NCBI GenBank assembly: GCA_964234715.1
Contig: OZ174275.1
From: Podarcis melisellensis
Lineage: Eukaryota
DNA: 64,000 bases
Strand: one strand, 5' to 3'
Under the pieces are notes generated by a model that worked only from the letters and a program-made list of their open reading frames with translations, had not been told where the DNA came from and searched no databases. A program made the translations under genes and the position numbers. Positions 7,376 to 52,538 of the stretch are shown here, piece after piece (position 1 is the first letter of the stretch; each line of letters opens with the position of its first letter).

Positions 7376-7542
7376 CTACTAAATAAGATATTGTGGGTGA
7401 GCTGGATTTTATGTAGATTTCACTGAAATTCTCCAGCAGCGTCTGTGAATTTGCTAACCATTAAAACAAAAAACAATTGCATTGAAGTGACCGAAAAGCT
7501 CTACGAAGAGCAAATGTTTACTTTTGACACTCTGTGTTTTAG

Positions 7543-9233
7543 GATTGAAGGAACAAAAGGAGAAGCCGCCCTGAAAATCGAGCACACTGTGAGACATGAC
7601 GCTGCATGGTATACTGCGACAGCCATCAACAAAGCTGGACGTGACACTACACGGTGTAAAGTGAATGTTGAAGTTGAGCTCACTGAACCCGAACCAGAGA
7701 GAAGATTAATCATTCCCAAGGGGACTTACAAAGCAAAAGAGATTGCAGCACCAGAACTAGAACCTCTCCACTTGCGTTATGGTCAAGAGCAGTGGGAGGA
7801 AGGTGACCTTTACGACAAAGAAAAACAACAGAAGCCATTTTTCAAGAAGAAGCTCACTTCCTTAAGGCTGAAGCGCTTTGGGCCAGCCCATTTTGAGTGC
7901 AGACTCACGCCGATTGGTGACCCAACCATGGTGGTGGAATGGCTGCACGACGGCAAGCCCTTGGAGGCAGCCAACAGGCTTAGAATGATTAATGAATTTG
8001 GATATTGCAGCCTTGACTATGACGTATCCTATCCCAGAGACAGTGGAGTGATCACCTGCAGAGCTACAAACAAATATGGCACTGATCACACATCGGCGAC
8101 ACTCATTGTTAAGGACGAGAAGAGCCTTGTTGAAGAATCCCAACTGCCAGAAGGCAGGATGGGGCTGCAACGCATTGAAGAACTCGAGAGAATGGCCCAT
8201 GAGGGCGCTCTTCATGGAGTTACAGAAGATCAGAAAGTCAAACAGAAGCCAGAAATAGTCTTGTTTCCTGAACCAGCAAGAGTTGTTGAGGGTGAAATAG
8301 CACGGTTCCGCTGCCGGGTGACTGGTTATCCGCAGCCCAAAGTCAACTGGTACCTCAATGGCCAACTTATCCGTAAAAGCAAGAGGTTTAGACTCCGTTA
8401 CGATGGGATCTATTACTTGGATATTGTGGACTGCAAATCCTACGATACAGGTGAAGTAAAAGTAGCTGCTGAAAACCCCGAAGGTGCAACGGAACACAAG
8501 GTGAAACTTGAGATTCAGCAGCGGGAAGATTTCAGATCCGTGCTTCGCCGAGCACCTGAGCCTAAGCATGAAGCTCCAGCAACGGAGCCTGGCAAACTTT
8601 TGTTTGAAGTTCAAAAGGTCGACAAGCCCGTTGAGAAAACTACCAAGGAGGTGGTGACGCTGAAGAAGGCCGAAAAAGTGAGCCACGAAAAAGTGTCTGA
8701 AGAATCTGAGGAACTCCGCAGTAAATTCAAGCGTAGAACTGAGGAGGGCTATTTTGAAGCAATCACCGCTGTGGAGCTCAAATCTCGCAAAAAGGACGAG
8801 TCCTATGAAGAGCTGCTTAAAAAGACAAAGGACGAACTTCTTCACTGGACCAAAGAGTTAACCGAGGAAGAGAAGAAAGCCCTGTTGGAAGAAGGCAAAG
8901 TCACTATTCCAACCATCAAGCCAGAGAAGGTTCAACTTAGTCCCAGCATGGAGGCTCCCAAAATATTGGAACGCATCCAAAGCCAGACAGTTGGCCAAGG
9001 AAGTGATGCCCATTTCCGTGTCCGTGTGGTAGGCAAACCAGACCCAGAGTGCCAATGGTTCAAAAACGGTGTGCAGATTGAGAGGTCAGATCGCGTCTAT
9101 TGGTTCTGGCCGGAAGATAATGTTTGTGAGCTGGTAATCCGAGATGTAACAGCAGAGGACTCTGCCAGCATCATGGTGAAAGCCGTTAACATAGCTGGTG
9201 AAACCTCAAGTCATGCTTTCTTGTTAGTACAAG
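7543..9233 (+). CDS. TTN: TTN exon 28: end of Z7, Z8, Z9, insertion, Ig I1
   Basis: TAG|GATT...CAAG|GTAATA; 1691 nt open frame; I1 [19 protein letters not shown]. Confidence 0.98.
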
Positions 9234-9354
9234 GTAATATCCCTTTTCAAAAGGGGGCCTCTTGCCCCCTTTCCAAAATGTTGTCTTCTTTTTATGCTCC
9301 AAACAGATAATATTCATTCTCATCTTTTGGCTTCTCTTTTTATTTTCTTTGCAG

Positions 9355-33314: not shown

Positions 33315-36300
33315 AACTGTTCTTCGGTGAAGAGCCAGAATATGCAGAAAACCCGGCTGGCAAACAGGCTGCTTCTGCTGATTCCGTAGATCTTCCGCAA
33401 CATGGATCTCTCCCGGATCTGAAGGGCACAAGTGGAATGTCATTTATGCATTCCTGGCCTGAGAAACAGAAACCTTCTTTCACACAAAAGTTAAAGTATC
33501 GGTCTGTTATGGCTGGAGAGCCAGTTGTTTTCCAGTGCAAATTGAGTGCCCTTCCTTTGCCCCAAATAACATGGTACCATAACAACAGGCAAATCCCCCA
33601 AAGTCTGCGAAGGCGAATAAAGAGTGAGAGCTGCATGGATATGCACAGCTCCAGTCTAGAGGTAAAAGAAGTTCAGGAAAGGGACTCAGGGAGTTACAAG
33701 GTTTTTGCTATTAACAGTGAGGGTTCAGCTGAGTCCACTGCTTCATTGTTGGTAGCTCATGGTGACAAACAAAATGCCAAATACCTAGAGTTTTTGAGAC
33801 AGTCAGAGAGTACTTGTGAACGTATAGAGCATCTGGTGCAGAAAAGGAGTGGCGATAGGCTCAAAGTTGATCTGCGGTGTATTGGTTCTCCGTTTGATAA
33901 GAAGCAGGAAACCGAGAAAGCGCTGAGAGCTTTTTCTCCTACCAAAGGGATGGTGAGGACCATAAGCTTTGAAAGCCTCTCGTCCTTAAGAAAAGGATTT
34001 GTATACGATAAGGATTGGGTAAGAAACAGGCGTGCAGGTAGGGGGTGTAGTGAGGGAGAGGCTTTGCTTGACGAGGAAACAAAAGTAAAGTTGCAGCGAC
34101 TTCGCGAGGCAAAAAAAGCCATGCTGGAAAAGAAAAAAGTGCTTCTATCACAGGGATCGACAGAGGAACACCTTCCCTCTGCGAAAATTGTAGGAATTGG
34201 AAATAAAAGAGGCCCATTGGCCCGTTCAATCTGTGCAGCATCTCATGTAGAGACAAAGGGACTTGCTTTCCAAACTATAGAGCAGATTAATGAAAAGGCC
34301 ATGTTACCGACAGTGTCAGGCACTAAAGAAGTTACGGTAGGAAGTTCCAGCAGGCAGCTTGAGAAAACATCAGAAAAATTTCAGGTTAGAATGGAACGGA
34401 TCCTGGGCCTTCCTGGGCCTCCTCAGATTCTCCAGGATTTTCCTGATAAAAGCAATAGGGGAGGAATGTTCCAGAGACAGGAGGTAGTAGCCTCTAAAGG
34501 GAACATGAAGCCACAAGTTCCAGAAACAGATCCAAAGGCAATTGGGAGCACAAGATGGATGCACCATACTTATACCCATGGAAAATCAGAAGAAGCAAGA
34601 ATGGATACTCAAGACTTCAAGGCGACAAAAACCATTAAGAAAAACCCCTCTCCCCTGGTATATGTACTTTTGACTGATGATGTCAGTGAGAGAGAGAAAG
34701 ATGATGTCAGTGTGAGAGAGAAAGATGATGTCAGTGAGAGAGGGAAACCTGACATGATGATGTCTGATACAATCACATTGAACATTAATGAACCTGTGCC
34801 TGTTTTTGAGATCAGGGAAATGAGCAAAACTGTAGAAACGGCAATGTCAGTAAACAAATGCTCCCTTGAAACTGAAGAGTCTGTGTTGGCTGAGGTCACT
34901 GAAACAGAAATGGAGATAACAGAACCACCTGACAAATTGGTGAGGCCTCTTCCGAAATACCTGGAGCCATGCCCCCCTTTCTTTGTTCATGAAATTGAAT
35001 CACAAGAAGTAAGCGAAGGAGAGAGCTGTATTTTTAATTGTGATTTCCAAGGCCATCCACAGGTCACAGTCACTTGGTATAACAATGACAAGCCGCTGTC
35101 ACGTAACCAAGAATGTAACATCAGAACCACAGAAAATAGTTCTACACTGACATTCTCCACCATTGTCCGTGATCAGGAAGGCTCCATTACTTGTGTGATA
35201 TTTAACCAGCATGGGACTGCTACAACTTCAGGAACGCTAAAAGTGAAAAGAAAGGAAAAGCCTGAATTTGAACCATTCAGTATATGTAAAGTTGAGCTTT
35301 CACCAGACTATGCAGAAGAGGAAGAGGAACTCAGTTTGGCATTTGAGTATTCAAAAAAAGATGAACCTGATTTAAGTATGGATGGCAGAGCCACTCTCCT
35401 GCCTCCACAGATTAACCTGCCCAGACCTTGCATTTCTGATCCAGATCTGCTTTCACTTCCTGTGGAAATAAAAATAACTGCTCCAACCCCAACTCCAGAA
35501 CAAGATGAAGAATTTAAAGAATTAACTCAGTTTGTTGAGTTTGTGCCTGAAGAACCCCCTGAAGAACAAACTTCTGCAGGACTAAAGCATAAGTTTAAAT
35601 TTTCATTTGATGTGGCTCATGAACCCCCCAAAATCTTAAAAGAAATTCAACAACACGTTAGATGTAGAGAAGGGGATTCGGTGGTACTTGAATGCTTAAT
35701 ATCTGCAGAACCGCTGCCAATTGTAACATGGCTGCAGAATGATGGGATTTTAATCCCCACTGAAAAGTTTTACTTTGAGGAGGGAGATGGCGTTTATAGG
35801 TTGCACGTTTGCAAGGTTTCCATATCTGATGCTGGCACGTACAAATGTGTTGCCGAAAACAAAGCTGGCATAGTTGAAACTGTTTGTTATCTTTCAGTTG
35901 ATCCCACCGTGGAAATATTTTCGGATGAAACTGAGCTCAAAGCTGTCGAAAGCCAAGTCAGAGGAACTCAGGACCAGATTGCAAAAGAACATTTGGGGAC
36001 TTATTTTGAATCCTCAGTAGGACTTACAGAAAGTAGTTTTAGCGATAAAGCATATTCTGTAAGCCAGCAGTTCCACAGTGTTAGTAAACTGGATTTCGGA
36101 GGGGAAGAAACAGGTAGACCAGCCCAGGAAATGGAATCCCAGCTGCCAAATTATCTAAATGATGTAATGAAGTCTCTACTTGCTGATGAAAGTGAACACC
36201 CACATTTCCAGATCTGGGAGCAAAAAGAAGTATATAAAGAGATGGAGTCAAATGCAAAAGAAGAACAAAAGGTAGCCAGTATTTCAGAAATTTTAGCAGA

Positions 36301-39300
36301 CACTCCACTTGTTCAGGAATTTAGAGATACAGCTGCTGAGCAAGCCAAAGTAGAAAGCACATATAAACACACAGCTATGGAAATATCATCAAGCTGTCAA
36401 TTTGAAATGGCTGTAGAGAGTCATACGGAAAGAGAGAAGTCAGTTACAGGAGAAGACATTTCTGTAAGTCATGATGTAAAAGATGAAGGGAAAACTGTAA
36501 GAGACATATTTGAGAAGATGCAGAAGATTTCTAAAGATCAGGAATTCACACTAGCATATCTGGAACCAGAATCAGAGAGTCTTCAGTATGGACCAACTCA
36601 AGGTATATCACACAAGGAAATACCTTCAAGTGAGATAATCACAGACATACCATTTAAGGAAGTTGAAGAACGAATCTGCACTTTTGAGCAGGAGTTAAGT
36701 GCAAAAGAATCTATGGATCATAGGTTTTCCACACTGCTGCAAGAAGACAGTGATATCCATGAGAAGGATCAATGTTTTACTGATATATTAAGCAAGAATT
36801 CTCAGGATCAGTCAGCCATAGAAGAGAGAAGTATGTTACAAAATATAAGCAATGAACTCCAAAGTGCACCTAAGGAAGAACAACTTGACGATGAGGTTGT
36901 AAACAAAGAAAATCTGCAGGAGGCAGTAGCCAATGAACAGCAAGAACTGTTCAGAGTAGAAAAAGAGCAAGCATACAGAAGTTCTATCTCTGACAAAGAG
37001 GAAGGCACTTTGATCCATGATGAAAAGTTCACTAGCTTTGGTGAGGGAAAAGAGAAGGAAATCCATTGTGGTGAAGAATTGGTAGGAAAAGCAGATGTAA
37101 GTGTGCCTGAATTTGTATTTGATTTAAAACAAATGCTTACTATTGAAGACAACGTAGATAAGAATGCTCAAGAACAAACTGAAACTCAGGAACTCATAGG
37201 CCCAAGCTCAATTGCTGGCAAACTTGATATCTCACTTGATGGAATGCCGGTTCATGCAGATACAGAAACTGCTGATGAACAACAAAACAGACTTAAGTCA
37301 GAGGAAGTGTATGCCAAAGAAAAATGTTTGGTTTCTGAAATAATACAAGCTAATACAAACAAAATCACAGAATCAGCACAAATCGGCATATCAGCTCTAG
37401 AACAAAGATTGGATTCTAGTCAAGGTATTTCTAAAGAGGGTGAACTTGTAAAGGAAGCAAATTATGCCCAAGAAGATGCATTATGCCTAGAGAAGGAAGA
37501 ATTTGGTTTACATCCAGCTTCCTTAGGCACAGAAACTGTTGTTGAGGAACGAGAGGAAATCGTTATCAAAGAACTTTCAGATTTTGAAAGAACAGACCTA
37601 GGCAAGATAATAGAAAGTGCAGAAGTAGACACATCAGCTGAGAGTTATAGCCAGGATATCAACAAAGAGAAGGAACTGGGAGAAGGAATATTTGATTTAA
37701 AACAACTTTCTCTGCATGTAGAAAATGATAGTCAAAACCAGGACGATGTCCTTGTGAAAGCTCTGCATTCCGGTTCTGAAGAAATGAAACTAGATGTCAA
37801 CAAAACCCCAGAAATTGTACAATCTCCCACTTTGTTTCTAGAGCAAGAAAGAGCTTCTCAACAAGAGCTTTCCCAAGATACTGAACCAGTAAAGACAGAA
37901 TATAGTTTCAAGGAAGCTATCTTATCCTTTGAAGAAGAATTTTCCTCCAAACAATCTAACATAGAAATTGTTGTTCAAGAGGAAGTTCACATTGAGGAAA
38001 AACAGACACATGAAAAGAATCAAGATTCTGTTTTTACTGTTCCGGACATAGAAATTATTGGGGGGAAATACGTTAAAACTGAATATTCAGTTGCTGAAAG
38101 CCTGGAAACTGACGTTGCTGAACATGCACACAAAAAATCGGATTTAGAGGTTTCTAAAGTAAATGAAACTATAAAGGAAGAAAGTGGTGCACTGCAACAA
38201 TCATTACCCCCTAAAAATGGCATTTTTGACTTAAAGCAAGCTTACTCAGATATAGAAAAAAATAGCCACCTACCAGAGACAGAAGAAACATACTTAAAAA
38301 ACCTCTATTCCGCTTCTGAAGGAGTTCAGGCTGATACACAGAGTACCATGGAAAATGCACGTCAAATAATGCATTCTTGCCAAAAAGATTCCTTCTCTTT
38401 GAAAACCATGATGGAAGAAGAAAATGTTCAGGAACGTGCATCCCCAGAAAACAAAGGCATTGATTTAAAATTAGCTTTTCTGAATCTAGAAAATGTTGAT
38501 CAACAGCAAGAAGAGAAGTTGCCACGGGGGCAAATACCTCTCAAATTCCTGTATTCTGCTTCAGAGGAAATGGAAGCCTTTCAAGTGCAGCAGCTGAAAT
38601 CCACTGAAAGCAATGTCCTCTACAAGAGCAGCGACCACAAAGAATGCACCCTGTCCCCAGGGAAAGAACTACAAACACAAGAGCAAATGTTTGATCTGAA
38701 AGCACATGCTGCATCTTTATCACAAGGCTTTTCATTGAAGGAGGCTGAAACATTACCAGAGAAAGAAGTGGGTTCCTTTAATCTGAGGTCGGCTTTTGAG
38801 ACCATGGGTACAGAGACAGAGAGTTTCATAAAACAGCTACAGAAGGCAAGCGTACCAGAGGAAGGAGTTTCTCTAAGTGAGGAACTTCGTCAGAGCTATA
38901 AGGCGCGGCTGGAGGGAGATAATTCCCTAGAACAAAAATTACAAGCGGAAGCAGAGCTGACAGTGACACAAATACTGAAGAAGGCCTTAGAAACGGTTAG
39001 CCTTTCTACTGAACAGGAGCCTACTACAAAACGGCATTGCGATCAGGAGGGGAAAATTTCTGAGGAGGAAGTGCTTAGGATGCCAGATGAAGCCTTTCTG
39101 TGGGGGCAGCCAGAACCCATCCCTCTCAGTCAGTATTTTCAAAACCAAGTGAAAGAAACTGGTGTCCTTGAAGTGGATAGTTTCATATCTGATTTGAAAA
39201 AAGCTGCACATGGAAAGAAGCCTCAAAGCGTTCATGAAACAGGGGGAGAAAAGGCACATGTTACTGAGGGGACTACTGATATCGAGAAGCCTTTTGATAG

Positions 39301-41659
39301 CCAAATAATGTCTGACAAACAACCATCATCACAGAGCTCAGCCAAGGAGCCCTCGTTGGCCCAGTTCCTTCTTTCCTTAAAAGATGAATCACTTATAAGC
39401 CAGGGAGGTGTGACAGGAGAATGTGAAACTACTGAATTCATGAATCGTCTTCTAGGAAATCTAACTGAAGGGGCTACCAAAGAAACTACTCTTCACACTG
39501 AAGAACTCCCTCCTCCTCCTCCTCATGAAGGAGCAGATTTCTCTCTTACAAAATATTTGCTTGCTGCCAGAGAACAGGAGATCCCAGTTGTCAGAGAGAG
39601 CTCATCCAGGACTCTGACCAGGGAGGGATCTATCACATCCTTGGAGGTTGAAGATGTTACATTTAGCACCGTTTATGATTATTACAAGCAACAGCAAGAA
39701 CTGACCCGCCCTTTTTCTCCTGAGTCAGAAATGTCTATTGATATTGACAGCATGAGCGGAGACGAAATGGTAGAGGCTGAGGGATTCTACACACCACCAT
39801 CGTCAGTGGATAATTTTGAATCTCCCATGTCTTTTGAGTCTTATCACACACCAATTGGCAGCCCGGAACGATATTCTACACCTTCAGAGGAACGATACTC
39901 TACACCATCAGAGGAGCGATATTCTACACCGTCAGAGGAGCGATATTCTACACCATCAGAGGAGCGATATTCTACACCATCTGCAGAGTCAAACAGAGCT
40001 TCAATGAGGTCTCCTGCAAATCTATTGAGGGGAAGTACCCCACCAGAACATTACCAAACACCCCGTGGCTCTCGTTTGCGACACAGGAGCTCTTCTCTCG
40101 AAGAGCTACGTGCTGAAATGTTCGGTACACCTTGTGAAGCATTGGAACCAAAGGGAAACGAAATTCCCCCTGCATTTATTAAGCCATTGACTAAAAGAAA
40201 AATCTATGAGAACACCACATTGCGTTTTATTGCCGAGGTCATAGGGATTCCCATACCTGATGTGAAATGGTATAGAAATAAGTCATTGCTTGAGCAAGAT
40301 GAAAGGGTCAAAATACAAAAAGAAGGTGATGTTTGTATCTTAGAAATCCGCAACATTCAAAAAACAGATGGAGGGGAATATATGTGCCATGCAATAAATA
40401 TCATAGGCGAATCCAAGAATATCGCACAAGTACAAGTGTTACCCCATGATGGAAGAGCTTTGGCTCTTCCTCCTCCAGTAACTCATCAACATGTTATAGA
40501 GTTTGATATAGAACAAGGGTCAGCGTCACGAACACCTTCGCCTCAGGAAATTCTCCTGGAAGTAGAGCTGGATGAAACTGAGATTAAGGAATGTGAGAAG
40601 CAAGTGAAAATAGCCACTATTCCTGAACTCACTTCTGATAATCAAAGTATGGTTGTGTCTCTTGATGTTCTCCCTTTATCTCTGGTGGAACACACAACGG
40701 CTTCTTTTGGGAAAGAGAACAAAGATGTTACAATTGACTTTGAAGTCACCGAGATGCCTCCACGCTTTACCACCCCTGTCTTTGACATAGAGGTTCCAGA
40801 AAAATCTGAGGCATTGTTTCATTGTACAGTCGCAGGCTGTCCTACCCCAGTAGTGCAGTGGTTTAAGGCAAATCAGTGCATTTCTTCAGACGCTTTGAAG
40901 TACACTGTTAGAAGTGAGAATGGAAGTCATAGTCTTAAAATTCATAATGTACAGCATTCTGATAGTGGCATGTATTTGTGTAAGGCTGTTAATGCTGTTG
41001 GAGAAGCTATATGCAGGTGCTTGTTAGCTGTAACCGAGGGCCAAGGGGCTCTTGCAGTGACCAATGATGGAAGTCAGGCAGATTTAAGTTTGGATAGCAC
41101 TAGTGGTAGGCCTCAAAAGATTGATTTGCTTGTTGATAATACTATCCAAAATGGCAACCAGACAGAAATAGAGCTGGAGTTTGAGTTTGAAGGTGACACT
41201 GATGATTCTCAGAAAGCTGTTAAATTGGTAGCTGTTACAGAACAGGAGCAGGAAGAGGAAGGAGAAGCATGTGTAAATATTAACTTTGATGTATTTGCTG
41301 AACTATCCAAAGAAGAGCAGATTGAATTTAAAGGTGAGAGCACAGACAGCTGCAGCTTTGAATTTCAAGTTACAGAAGCACCTCCAAAGTTTATGAAACA
41401 TATTTCTGATTGTGCTTCTTTCAAGGGTACCTCTGCAAGTTTCCAGTGTTTAGTAGTTGGTTCTCCAAAACCGGCAATAAGCTGGTTTAAAAATGGGGCG
41501 TTGATTCATGAAGAGAGATACTGTGTGGAGGAAAGTCAGGAAGGTTGTCACAGTCTGACTATAAGAAGCTTAGTCCAAACTGATGAAGGCGAGTATAAGT
41601 GTGTAGCAACCAACAAAGCAGGGACTGCCTATAGCAGTGCTTCGTTAACAATCTGCTGA
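33315..41659 (+). CDS. TTN: TTN exon 48, novex-3 alternative terminal exon (6 Ig domains plus long acidic unique regions, own stop codon)
   Basis: CAG|AACTG acceptor in frame with the 2740-aa ORF; six I-set Ig starts (KPSF, PPFF, PPKI, PPAF, PPRF, PPKF); TGA at 41657-41659. Confidence 0.96.
34676..34747 (+). repeat. Coding 24-bp tandem repeat x3 (DDVSEREK)
   Basis: GATGATGTCAGTGWGAGAGRGAAA x3. Confidence 0.95.
39866..39985 (+). repeat. Coding 24-bp tandem repeat x5 (ERYSTPSE)
   Basis: GARCGATAYTCTACACCNTCAGAG x4 plus a final ERYSTPSA copy. Confidence 0.97.
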
Positions 41660-47336: not shown

Positions 47337-47584
47337 CAGTGGTACCTTGGTACTTGAATGGCTTGGTTCCCAAACAAATTGACTCCCAAACGCCGCAAAC
47401 CTGAAAAGTGTACTGGGTTGTGAATGTTTTTTGGAAGCCTAACGTCCAATGTGACGGACAAGTGTCTTCCGATTGGCTCTTCTGATTGCAAGAGCCAATC
47501 AGACGCCGTGCCTTGGAAATTGAACGTTTCAGAAGTTGAATATCCTTCTGGAATGGATTACGTTCAACTTCTGAGGTACCACTG
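47337..47584. mobile_element. Tc1/mariner (Tigger-like) MITE, 248 bp
   Basis: TA|CAGTGGTACCT ... AGGTACCACTG|TA: 11-bp perfect TIR and TA TSD. Confidence 0.85.
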
Positions 47585-47779
47585 TATAAACTGAATCCTA
47601 AAATAATGTCCACCCTTTGATTCAAGGTATATTTTAAAATATATGAATGTTTTAATCATCTTGCAGCATTACGAAGTGTTGTCCTAACATGATAATTGAT
47701 TGATAGTATCTGGTAGATACAAGATGAATTTTTCAAGAAAGCATTTTAGTAAAATGTAAATAATTTTTTTCCCATACAG

Positions 47780-50700
47780 AGATTTCTAGCTCTATTATTG
47801 TGTCTTCTGAGGAAGAAAGAACTGAGAGTTACACCAGCGGCCTACAATTATGTGATAGAGATAAAACACTTGAACTCATGCCTGAAGATCCAGTTTATTC
47901 TAGCAGTTTAGAGGTGAAAAGGGAGAAGAGCAATGTCCCAACCTTCCTCAAGCATGTGTCAAATGTTGAAATAAGTTTAGGAGATTTAGCTAGACTTTCT
48001 GTTGTAGTTACTGGGGATCCAAAACCACAGATACAATGGTATTTCAATAGTGTTAAGCTGACATCATCTGCAGACTATAAGTTTGTGTTTGATGATAAAA
48101 ACTATAGCCTCATTATTCTCTCCACAAAATTTGACCATGAAGGGGAATATACTTGCATTGCTAGTAATATCCATGGAGAGACAGCCTGCTCTGCTTATCT
48201 GAAGGTCAATCCTAAGGGAGATGAAAGGGAACTGGAGGCAGAATTCACTGCAGAGAAGACAGGAAGTCCTCGACCTCCATGTTTTGTTAGGAAGCTAGAC
48301 CCTGTTCAGTGTGCACAAGGTGCTCCTGCTGTGTTTGAGTACAAAGTGGCTGGGGATCCACCTCCAGAGATTCAGTGGTTTAGGGGAAACAACCAGATTT
48401 TCTCCTGTGCACGATACACTATCATTCATAATCGAGATGGTTCTGGGTCACTAATGGTGAATAACTGCCAGGGGGCCGATGGTGGCTTATACATCTGTAA
48501 GGGAATCAACCTCATAGGTGAAGCCTCTAGCAGTGCAGAACTTCTTGTTCTCTTAGACATGCCTGGGGAGGCTCCATATAAGGAAAAGAAGAGTAAACAG
48601 AAAACACGCACCAAGTCATATAAAGAAACTGTAAGTGACGAGGCTACTGTCTCACGGATATATGCCGTTAAACTGCCTGGTGATGATAGGCACGATGGGC
48701 AGCATGTGATGTATACAATTGGAACTGAAGATAGGCATTCACTACATAGTGAAGAGGTAGATGTTTTGCAGGTGGCTTCCTACTCAACAGCTACTATACA
48801 GCAGGAAGCCCTTCTGACCCAACAAGTAGCCTTGCTTGAGTCTCAGAAAGTTGGAGAAATTGCAGATCCATCTTCTCAGGCCAATGAAAAAGTGGCTTCT
48901 TCAGCTTTTACTACAGGTGAGGTGAAGGAGCACCCCGGTTTCCTAGAACAACACTCTGAACCAATTCAAAGCCCACCAATAGTCGAATTGCCGGGTTCCT
49001 GGTGCCACCAAGTTTCTGATCTCTGTTTACCTGTTGTGGAGGAAATAAACCAAGAAGACAAAGAAAAGGGGCTGCAAACCAAGCTTCCAGAAATGGTCAG
49101 GCCAACGTCAGCCATAGAGCAAACATCTCAGTTTGCCTCCATTCTATCTGAGGAGAAATATGTGGTAAGCCCTGGTGAGTCTGTTGTATTCTCAGTCCCA
49201 GGAGCTGAGGAAGTTATTGAAACCAGTGAGCCTAAACATGCAGTATGTGTTCCTAGAATCGAGGGCATCCAAGAATTGTCCAAGGAAAGTTCTTTGGCAG
49301 ACCACACACACAAGTGGGAGAATATCAGACCAGCTAAAGAACGAGGCAGCTTTTTCCAGTCTGCTGTAGCAGCAGAACAATGCAAAATAAGTGAAGCTCA
49401 TGCTGAGGCAATCGATTATGCTGATTCACCTGCAGAAGTTAGTCATACCCAAGAATCATCCAATGTATTACATGTGGCTACGATTGCCTCTGAACAGATG
49501 TTCCCCAAAGAGTCCGCCTTTGATGCAACCATTGCAGAGCAGCAGAAGGGCTCCCTGGAACAGGACAGGCTCGTCCAAACAGCTCTGGTTGCTGAAGAAA
49601 AGCAGCAGCTCTCTGATGAACACACTGAGGACCTTCCCAGGTTAGACTGCACGGTGGTAGCAGAAATCCAAAGAGAGGGTGAAAAGCCACTGCATTTGCC
49701 TGTTGTACATGGACAAGGCTCGCTTCCTAGAGAAGAGCATTTTAGTTCTGAGGTGCCCCTGGAAGATGAGGCACTGTCTAGGAAAAGCCCATGTTTGCTA
49801 CACTGCTTAGTAACAGAAGAACAAGTCTCCACGTCTTGTGAAGATGCTAAGCAGTTTCCTCCTCTGGCAGAGGCAGTTAGCATTCAGGTCACCCAGGAGC
49901 CCATTTCTGTGTTGCATCTCCAAACGAGCCAAACTGAGCTCGTTTGGAAGGAAGGCATCTTGGCTGTACAAGAACCCGAACCCCAAAATGCTTTGCAGAA
50001 AGCTGAAATAATGCTCAAACGTGCTGTGGCATCTGAGGAAAAAAACCAGATAGCTGCCGAGGCCCTAGAGGCTTTTCAGAGTGGCCTTGCTGGAGAATAC
50101 CCTGTGGCTATAGCAGAGCCTCAGCTTCGTAAGTGTCTGACCACTGTGGCTGAGAAGATGCTTCTGCCCAAAGAGGAAATCCTCCCCAAAGCAGGAAAAG
50201 AGCAGAAAGCTACCCTGAGGAAGGAAGACTTTCAACCAGTGATGCAGGTATCTGATGTGACTGAAGAGAGGGTCTTGGATGTAGGACATGCTGAGCCATT
50301 TGAGGCTGTTCAGCCCATGAGTTGTGAGGTGGTGTCTGAGCCCAGGTTGCCTTCAGAATCCACCTGCGTTGAGGATCAAGGTGTTCCGATAGAGAGCATC
50401 GATCTCTTGGAAGCCACAGAGCAAGAATTTGCAGCCCGCATCCAAGAAGGTCAGTCAGTCAGGCTCCCATTGTTATTGGAGGAAAAACAGACATTAAAGG
50501 AAGAGCACTTGGACAAGATCTCAAGGCCAGATGCTGAGAACGCAACAGCCCAAAAGCAACTGGGGCTGCTTATGGATGTGCCTGAAACATGGGAAAACAA
50601 AGTGCTTCGGAAAGAAGAAGAACTTGCAGCTGAGACTCCCGTATGTTGTAGCTTAGATATGAAGGCTCAGATCAGAAAGGCCCTGAAAGTAGCTCTGACA

Positions 50701-51640
50701 AATGAACAGCACTTATTTCCATTGGATGCTTTCGATGATATTGAGAGCGTTCAATTAAAGACTGTAACAGTGATCAAAGAACCTCAACATGCAACATGCA
50801 CTTGCCTTGTAATCTTGGAAAGTTCCAATACTGCAGAAATAACTCTCTCTCTAGATGGAATATATTCTCAGACAGCTGATTTCAAAAGTGAATTGCAAGC
50901 TGCTGTTCACTCCATTATTTATGACGAGAAACATGTTCTGACAGCAGAGGAACCCAGTGCCATAGCAGAACCTAAACACCACAAGTTGCTTGCTTCTTGT
51001 TCACCTCCCAAACTAATGCAGTCTGCTACTGTAACTGAGACACCTGTTCAGCAACAATCTGTCAGTAATATTATTGGTTCACCTGAGCTACATCATGCTT
51101 ACCTGAGTACTGAATCAGAAATACAGGAGGAGCAACTTGTGTCTATTCAAGAAGTCCAAACTATTGCTCTTAGTGAGCACATTAAAGATGTAGGTACAAC
51201 CACACTCACCCTTGATATTCCTGTAGCAGCAGCCCCAGTTGAGAGGTTAATAGATGCTCTAAAAGTGAAAGAGAGAAAGGAAGAACTTTTTGAGGAAAAT
51301 GAAGAGGAGGCACATGTAGTTAAGGCTAGCAAACGAGAAGACAGTCTAGCGAGCAGGGATTGTCCCATCATGCGCCAAAGTTTTATAGACACTGTTGTTG
51401 AAGAAGGTGACAGCGTAAGTCTTACTTCCATTATAGAAAATGTTAAAGTGGTGAATTGGTATTTTGGGGATAAGCTGGTATCTTCAGAAAATGAGTTCAA
51501 GTGCTTGCAGGACCATGACACATACACACTAGTAATCAACCAAGCATTCAAGGAAGTGCATCAAGGAGAGTACACCTGTGAGGCTCTGAATGAAGGTGGA
51601 AAAACAACAGCAACAGCGAAACTCACAGTTGTAAAAAGAG
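47780..51640 (+). CDS. TTN: TTN exon 49, cardiac N2B element (Ig I24, I25, unique sequence, I26)
   Basis: CAG|AGATT...AAGAG|GTTGGA; 3861 nt phase 1/1; KLTSSADYKFVFD, RIQEGQSVRLPLLLEEKQ, ends TAKLTVVKR. Confidence 0.96.
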
Positions 51641-52538
51641 GTTGGAATATGGGGATAAAATATTGCTTTCCTATTTTCACTCATTTGCTAACTGAATAGA
51701 ACACACATATACATATTTGTATCTCTAGTAGCATTTTGGATACAGATATAAGAAGTATATAAACTTCAGCTGTGCACCACCAAACTAATCACAGATCCTC
51801 CACTTTTTGTTTCCTCTTTAGAACTTTTATTTCTTTAAATATATTTCTTATTCACACCTTTTATTTGCATTTTGCACTTTTTGGTACTGAAACAAAATTA
51901 AATTTTGTTTCATGAATGATGATTGTTAAATAAACTATTTGTAATGTCGGATTTTTTAAAAAGAGTGCATGTCTTAGGAGCACTTTCATCCCCATATCCA
52001 CAGAGCAACTTGGTTCACTTTTCCTTTTCATTGCTACAATAAAGATGCAATCCTGAACACGCTTACTAGGGAGGAAGCCCCACTGAGCACAGTGAGACTG
52101 GCTTCCAAGTAGACGTGCCAAGAGATTGTCCAGCACGTTGTAGAAGTCATTGCACCATTCTAGCATAATGTCACACATTTCATGTTGAAAATGTTCTGGT
52201 ACAACCTGGTATAATTTCATATATCATGTTGTTTGCATGCCTTTAGTAGTAAGTAGCACATCAGAGTATCTTCAGAGTTCCATTATGCACTGCAATGTAG
52301 GTAGCCCTCTGGTAGACTGAGCACTGCTTTTGGTTTGCTTTCACCTCTGACAACCATTTTTCTTTACAGCCACTTTCCTTGGGTAGCTCATGAAACCACA
52401 CATCTCATTTCTGTTGGTCACTTTATTAACAGTGTTTTGGAATGTACACTTATAAGCACCATACATGCTATTAGTATTACAATATCCACATAAACATGGG
52501 TGGTTGTAACCACATTATTCTTTGACTTTTAACTTCAG

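Follow-up and report, generated by a model that had tools for sequence, protein, structure and literature searches.

A cryptic tandem array of 74-residue units in the titin N2B unique sequence of a squamate reptile

The N2B 'unique sequence' (N2B-us) of titin in a squamate reptile is a degenerate tandem array, composed of nine clear 74-residue modules and two or three eroded copies at its ends. The array was found in a 64,000-nucleotide stretch of Podarcis melisellensis DNA (OZ174275.1), referred to below as the window; all coordinates are positions in this stretch, which contains no N. It is located in the titin N2B exon (47780–51640), where the 926-residue unique sequence (48571–51348, + strand) lies between the second and the third immunoglobulin (Ig) domain. 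As judged from orthologous sequences, it appears almost certainly to be a real, ancient repeat that is homologous to a folded domain, and its unit length is very probably under selection.

N2B-us is one of the three springs of cardiac titin and a target of PKA, PKG, ERK2 and CaMKII. It also docks FHL1, FHL2 and αB-crystallin, and cardiomyopathy variants map to it. Models have depicted it as a random coil devoid of features, to which a single folded island of unexplained origin was added in 2024. The first-pass annotation of this DNA, made from the letters alone, had remarked that the segment is usually treated as non-repetitive and disordered, in line with the published accounts: a 2021 review of N2B makes no mention of a repeat (PMC8553726), a 2026 review describes N2Bus as 'mostly unstructured' with one folded globule (PMC13031707), and the account of Sun et al. 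(PMC11530556) agrees with both. No description of a repeat in N2B-us was found in open-access full text, and an earlier mention in older subscription literature is possible. The array overturns the label 'unique sequence' and adds, in our classification, a new repeat family to a protein whose repeats are well known.

The repeat and its units

The first-pass annotation had proposed a tandem repeat of ∼74 residues (222 nucleotides), with at least nine units of low identity marked by two interleaved motifs. All of its motif coordinates (18/18) fall in the open frame that runs through the exon (47764–51699), and the strings that it quoted are present there. Motif A, a hydrophobic run followed by EEK, EEQ, AEQ, EER, NEQ or DEK, is found at frame residues 463, 537, 611, 685, 758, 834, 906, 980 and 1054 (frame residues of motifs and units are counted from 47764), the spacings being 74, 74, 74, 73, 76, 72, 74 and 74. 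Motif B extends from frame residue 433 to 1024 with the same period as motif A.

The two motifs are short and easily matched, in a sequence with abundant Glu, Gln, Leu and Lys, as would be expected if the periodicity had arisen by chance or from the Glu-, Gln- and Leu-rich composition, aided by a loose choice of motifs. This reading is refuted by analyses in which the motifs play no part. BLOSUM62 autocorrelation of the 926-residue unique sequence is highest at lag 74 (z 7.5, rising to 8.5 for residues 400–1100); z is near 0 or below at lags 72 and 76, lags 147 and 148 are likewise raised, and the top z in 500 shuffles over 200 lags was 4.3. Self-similarity against shuffled controls, which had been named in advance both as a check of the repeat and as a means of refuting it, thus favours the repeat at lag 74 alone (z 7.5–8.5 against a shuffle maximum of 4.3). 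A hidden Markov model (HMM) of the unit, another of the checks proposed, gave the same answer when each unit was scored with the profile of the other eight: 9/9 units were recognised, with 11.5–26.5 bits and z of 6.5–15. Shuffled units (300 per unit) scored ∼1 bit on average and reached the real score in 0/300 cases for eight units and in 1/300 for unit 1. The same top lag in orthologues and a profile-profile match with an E value of 1.3e-9, both described below, also speak against an artefact, which can be regarded as virtually impossible.

The units have diverged to a mean pairwise identity of 18%, and Tandem Repeats Finder, run on 47500–52000, detected nothing at a period of 222 and only two trivial microrepeats. 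'Cryptic' is therefore the right word, and the repeat is visible at the protein level only. A search of the six-frame translation of the whole window with the unit HMM revealed no copy outside the N2B exon, and none in the Novex-3 exon.

All copies are on the + strand. Unit 1 (49030–49251, frame residues 423–496; leave-one-out z 6.5) and unit 2 (49252–49476, 497–571) were delimited as HMM domains and recovered by the leave-one-out HMM. The same holds for unit 3 (49477–49698, 572–645), which has one-to-one orthologues in nine distant species, and for unit 4 (49699–49920, 646–719), unit 5 (49921–50139, 720–792), unit 6 (50140–50358, 793–865), unit 7 (50359–50580, 866–939), unit 8 (50581–50802, 940–1013) and unit 9 (50803–51024, 1014–1087), for each of which one-to-one orthologues were found as well. 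A degenerate N-terminal half copy that covers unit positions 27–67 is located at 48685–48807 (15.5 bits with the HMM iterated over orthologues and 6.2 bits with the HMM built from the window only). A very weak and doubtful copy at 48925–48987 (2.2 bits) is in register, with its projected start one period before unit 1, and a degenerate C-terminal copy at 51046–51162 (7.3 bits) is ∼11 residues out of register. With these eroded partial copies included, the array spans ∼48685–51162, which is most of the unique sequence. The array indeed lies where it had been placed at first (48830–51050), but its well-defined part is 49030–51024, and the earlier start at 48830 falls among degenerate copies.

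The unit consensus was derived from 121 units that were collected by iterating the HMM over orthologues. It contains three landmarks: L-P-K-E at unit positions 9–12, with the Glu present in 97% of the 121 units; a hydrophobic-x-x-E-E-K segment at positions 38–43; and K-E-P ([KR]-E-P) at positions 66–68, with the Glu present in 94%. Both motifs of the first-pass annotation are present in the unit, but the third landmark at positions 66–68 had been overlooked. Hydrophobic residues occupy positions 9, 46 and 54 in 93–98% of the 121 units and positions 15, 25, 34 and 38 in 82–88%. The two near-invariant glutamates and four hydrophobic positions are the predicted key residues of each unit.

The autocorrelation also contains signs of a half-period, lags 37, 111 and 186 being raised. 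In several fishes the iterated HMM detected an additional upstream copy 111 residues (74 + 37) before the array, and in a circular shift of the profile the best shift was 37 (z 4.08, compared with 3.45 for the 99th percentile of column-permuted controls). Together these observations point to an old duplication of a 37-mer as the origin of the 74-mer, and the unit is probably, although this is not proven, made of two 37-residue halves.

Orthology, length and shortening of the array

Most of the orthologues are open reading frames (ORFs) from assemblies, and the taxon sampling is partly known. The beaver (P0049) represents the mammals, and the human sequence printed in PMC11530556 entered no computation; three placental-mammal sequences that are more than 60% identical to beaver and possibly human (P0019, P0022 and P0032) were kept out of the analyses after one screening comparison. 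The top autocorrelation lag is 74 (or 73) in frog (z 5.8), whitefish (z 5.9), skate (z 3.7) and ten further orthologues (z 3.3–8.0). The iterated HMM identified 8–9 units in most complete non-mammalian sequences, with a spacing series of 75, 74, 74, 74, 73, 74 and 73/74, and the spacing series of the window units also occurs in the horned lizard Phrynosoma.

Each window unit matches its positional orthologue far above any paralogue (for example, unit 7 against frog scores 204 compared with 67), and units 3–9 have reciprocal best matches in 8–11 of 11 distant species, with 29–39% identity. The one-to-one orthology of units 3–9 indicates that the array is older than crown gnathostomes; the cartilaginous and bony vertebrates split ∼450 million years ago (PMC12241362). 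These unit matches place the array in the last ancestor that cartilaginous fishes, teleosts and tetrapods share, and it bears no sign of homogenisation, reshuffling or unit turnover since.

In the orthologue alignment, the indel events per 100 aligned residues number 0.91 for the array, 4.5 for the N-terminal flank and 6.4 for the C-terminal flank, at identities of 32%, 35% and 29%, respectively. Indels are 5–7 times rarer in the array than in the flanking unique sequence at near-equal identity, and length is therefore conserved far better than sequence. The alignments indicate that the unit length was kept at 73–75 residues while the sequence drifted to ∼30% identity. The view that the segment is a modular array whose register has been maintained, as put forward in the first-pass annotation, is strongly supported by the common spacing series, the one-to-one unit orthologues and the 5–7-fold deficit of indels.

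Not all lineages have retained an array of this size. The unique sequence of beaver has 559 residues and is 368 residues shorter than that of the window (927 residues in this comparison), equivalent to 4.97 units; its periodicity is weak (z 2.4), its spacing is irregular, and clear orthologues are found of the last units only. By this comparison, the beaver array is about five units shorter and eroded. Such erosion in mammals may be the reason why the repeat stayed unnoticed in mammalian sequences. A non-mammalian lineage (P0006 and P0036–P0038) has a unique sequence of 513 residues, 35% identical to that of beaver and 38% to that of the window, and keeps orthologues of the last four or five units; shortening of the array seems to have occurred outside mammals too. 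The difference between the long N2B elements of reptiles and fishes and the short mammalian ones can be accounted for in whole units.

The folded period and the possible role of the array

AlphaFold2, run on the whole unique sequence with 21 orthologues, returned one confident block at unique-sequence residues ∼691–795, in which the block-mean pLDDT (predicted local distance difference test) is mostly 70–85; the mean of the whole segment is 42.5. The block is a predicted helix-strand-strand-strand-helix domain (50641–50955, + strand) that begins with the main helix of unit 8 (unit position 24) and ends with that of unit 9 (unit position 49). It consists of helices 694–711 and 718–723, strands 727–736, 740–749 and 754–762, and helix 768–793. 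Two successive units supply the helices, in each case the E-E-K helix, and the strands come from the K-E-P region, from the junction between the units and from the L-P-K-E region. When the block orthologues were compared by hhalign with all other periods, the class of the block itself being excluded, 95 columns aligned in register (96.4%, E 1.3e-9). This match indicates that the 'structural domain' is one period of the array and not an island; in terms of profile similarity, the confident fold spans one array period and the adjacent helix, and its homology to the other periods is in register. The units that form the predicted fold are no better conserved than units 3–7, and helices of moderate confidence (pLDDT 55–76) lie within or overlap unit positions ∼20–50 in seven of the nine units. 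In beaver, the folded period has its orthologue at P0049:634–739.

A Foldseek search against the PDB with the 926-residue model, a poor query of mostly low confidence, found no match at E ≤ 0.001, and VIA-align wide with the same poor whole-segment query gave single-helix matches only (best Z 4.9); no match was obtained when the PDB was searched with the sequence of the unique segment. The α-β-β-β-α fold of the double-stranded RNA-binding domain (dsRBD) matches the block in the order of its elements and is similar in size, and a few dsRBD entries are among the weak Foldseek rows (E 0.05–0.1). However, there is no significant Foldseek or VIA-align match, and the topology is a common small one that is not evidence of kinship.

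Sun et al. (2024, Nat Commun 15:4496; PMC11530556) described an α/β domain of 115 residues in human N2B-us, which was predicted by AlphaFold2 and validated experimentally. The domain has three strands between two helical regions, unfolds reversibly at ∼5 pN (piconewtons), melts near 62 °C and is reported to be conserved down to zebrafish; the remainder of human N2B-us comprises 457 disordered residues (PMC11530556). The window block answers to the same description: its AlphaFold2 model is confident and places three strands between two helical regions, at a comparable length. We infer that the block at 50641–50955 is the orthologue of the human domain, the two being equated by topology, size and position only. 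Both belong to the same titin segment and measure ∼105–115 residues; they differ in that the human domain was published as a lone folded island, whereas here the fold is one period plus the neighbouring helix of an array of 9–12 units. The array would thereby explain the origin of the domain described in 2024.

The explanation that we consider best overall is held to be reasonably probable; the joint mechanism that it contains, periodic docking together with one folded period, is offered more tentatively. Every module would present short strand-forming and helix-forming segments in identical order, a fixed distance apart. Within the last period, they would pack on one another as a weak fold, which would hide them until a force of a few piconewtons opens it. 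In the other periods, they would be mostly exposed in a flexible chain, where LIM proteins (FHL1/FHL2) and chaperones would dock on them at regular intervals. The chain would meanwhile act as a spring, and the fixed unit length would preserve the spacing of the sub-sites. A precedent for such docking is provided by the titin Z-repeats (∼45 residues, α-actinin binding) and the 35-residue repeats of nebulin, which are tandem modules of sarcomeric giants with a period that matches the partner; their sequences are unrelated to the N2B units, and the period-matched partner is known for them but putative here. FHL2 contains four and a half LIM domains, and one FHL molecule per unit would explain the conserved unit length, a proposal inferred from human numbers. 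Those numbers are 24 predicted LIM-binding sites of 3–5 residues each, 5–15 residues apart, with 13 sites within 230 residues and 8 inside the domain (PMC11530556), a density that by our own arithmetic amounts to ∼4–5 sites per 74 residues.

Several observations weigh against this combination of docking and one folded period. Confidence of the AlphaFold2 model is low for 706/926 residues (76%). The period formed by units 3 and 4, modelled by AlphaFold2 with 120 paralogous and orthologous rows, reached a pLDDT of 66.6 and a pTM (predicted template modelling score) of 0.18 with no sheet; the alignment for this generic period left out the known domain, and the outcome counts as weak negative evidence only. 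Repeated folding is therefore unsupported beyond the last period. In human N2B-us, deletion of the structural domain abolished all unfolding steps (PMC11530556), which indicates that the remaining human units are not stably folded. The link between the predicted and the published domain consists of topology, size and position, the 37-residue half-period is only moderately supported (z 4.08 versus 3.45), and the figure of 4–5 LIM sites per unit is numerology from another species. The suggestion of repeated structure or periodic partner binding in the first-pass annotation is addressed in part only, on the side of structure: in-phase helices are predicted in most units and the one confident fold is an array period, but a generic period is not predicted to fold.

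Alternatively, each 74-residue unit might be a small, marginally stable α/β module of three strands and a helix, with the sheet packing on the helix of the preceding unit, and non-mammalian N2B-us would then be a string of weak beads that open singly at low force and not an entropic coil. A length of 73–75 residues maintained for more than 400 million years and a 5–7-fold reduction of indels are typical of folded domains, and the hydrophobic positions that every unit conserves map to the strands and helices of the confident fold. That this fold is homologous in register to other periods, that the units forming it are no better conserved than units 3–7, and that in-phase helices are predicted in most units also agree with folded units. 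Yet AlphaFold2 folded no other period, either in the whole segment or in the dedicated run with 120 paralogues (pTM 0.18), human N2B-us without the structural domain has no unfolding step (PMC11530556), and the best conserved residues are glutamates rather than core residues. A string of folded units is considered unlikely. A scenario built on it is doubtful to the same degree: non-mammalian N2B-us would be a chain of about ten weak α/β modules that hide LIM-binding strands and expose them unit by unit as diastolic stretch rises, thus acting as a graded, digital strain gauge, and mammals would have deleted or eroded about half of the modules on evolving stiffer, N2B-dominated hearts.

The periodicity might also be a fossil, inherited from an ancient internal duplication and with no present role, in a disordered entropic spring of which the total length alone matters. 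Identity among the units is only 18%, pLDDT is very low over most of the segment, four to five units are lost or eroded in mammals and the P0006 lineage, whose hearts still work, and the established functions are phosphorylation and spring behaviour (PMC8553726). A neutral relic, however, should gather indels like the flanks, whereas the array has 5–7 times fewer at the same identity. The 73/74/75 pattern, moreover, persists unit by unit across lineages that have been split since the gnathostome ancestor, and two Glu residues (97% and 94%) and four hydrophobic positions above 93% are retained among the 121 units. A relic without function is regarded as quite improbable, and docking along the array with one folded period is retained as the preferred mechanism. 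With constructs of defined unit number, the question of 'coil or weak domains?' becomes directly testable. Unit number and position within the unit provide a natural coordinate system for phosphosites, cysteines, binding sites and patient variants across species.

The N2B exon, the PEVK comparison and other features of the window

The window contains a run of Ig-encoding exons on the + strand, and its ORF listing includes a 2740-codon ORF and a 1299-codon ORF, the latter at 47800–51699. The N2B exon, also on the + strand, has 3861 nucleotides (1287 codons) and is flanked by introns of phase 1; its acceptor, a polypyrimidine tract with CAG, ends at 47779, and the donor GT starts at 51641. It was analysed alone as a single exon, not within a spliced titin model. 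The first Ig domain of the element (I-set, 47938–48207, + strand) was detected as Pfam PF07679 with the best stretch at residues 47–136 of the ORF starting at 47800, from which Pfam residue numbers are counted. The second (48256–48567, + strand, approximate limits) is an I-set stretch in Pfam with limits taken from the translation, and the third (51364–51630, + strand) matches Pfam Ig_2 and I-set at ORF residues 1189–1277. Pfam scanning of the 926-residue unique sequence detected no family at E ≤ 1. The order of Ig, Ig, 926-residue non-domain sequence and Ig is the layout of the titin N2B element.

A Novex-3 type terminal exon (33437–41659, a 2740-residue ORF ending in a stop) is located upstream of the N2B exon, and Ig exons are found on both sides. 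A search with the unique part alone returned relatives in the form of single-exon ORFs or partial gene models. Those of Leptodactylus (frog), Rhinoraja (skate), Scleropages (arowana) and Castor (beaver) are named titin, titin-like or titin a-like, those of Coregonus and Salmo are annotated as hypothetical or uncharacterised proteins only, and the closest named match, in Phrynosoma (63% identity), is annotated only as a hypothetical or Ig-like-domain protein. The exon layout, the place after the Novex-3 exon and the titin-named relatives therefore support the identification of 47780–51640 as the N2B exon of squamate titin, and the assignment of the region to titin N2B-us in the first-pass annotation is upheld on the same grounds.

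The PEVK region is likewise an I-band titin spring of degenerate tandem repeats (26–28-residue PPAK and poly-E) and is largely disordered (PMC8553726). Its units are short, with one per exon, and its length varies between species and isoforms (PMC8553726, PMC11033294), whereas the N2B array lies in a single exon and has a 74-residue unit and fixed, one-to-one orthologous units; the two have no sequence relation. An identity of the N2B units with PEVK/PPAK repeats was rejected on two counts: there is no Pfam match, including PPAK, at E ≤ 1, and the unit has 74 residues, compared with 26–28, and is not proline-rich.

The Novex-3 type exon encodes several Ig domains separated by long acidic unique stretches. 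In its unique part, the motif G-(I/M)-F-D-L-K-Q occurs five times, at 37118, 37691, 38225, 38690 and 38777, with spacings of 191, 178, 155 and 29 residues. Autocorrelation of this exon gave no significant fixed lag (top z 3.1 versus a shuffle maximum of 4.6), and the five occurrences may be scattered copies of a linear motif rather than a tandem repeat. The same exon contains at 39866–39961 a perfect four-fold tandem of the Ser/Thr-Pro-rich octapeptide E-R-Y-S-T-P-S-E, which could be a target of proline-directed kinases or a recent product of slippage. A 621-codon open frame at 7445–9310 encodes Ig domains and a Lys/Glu-rich linker, typical of Z-disc titin with Z-repeats.

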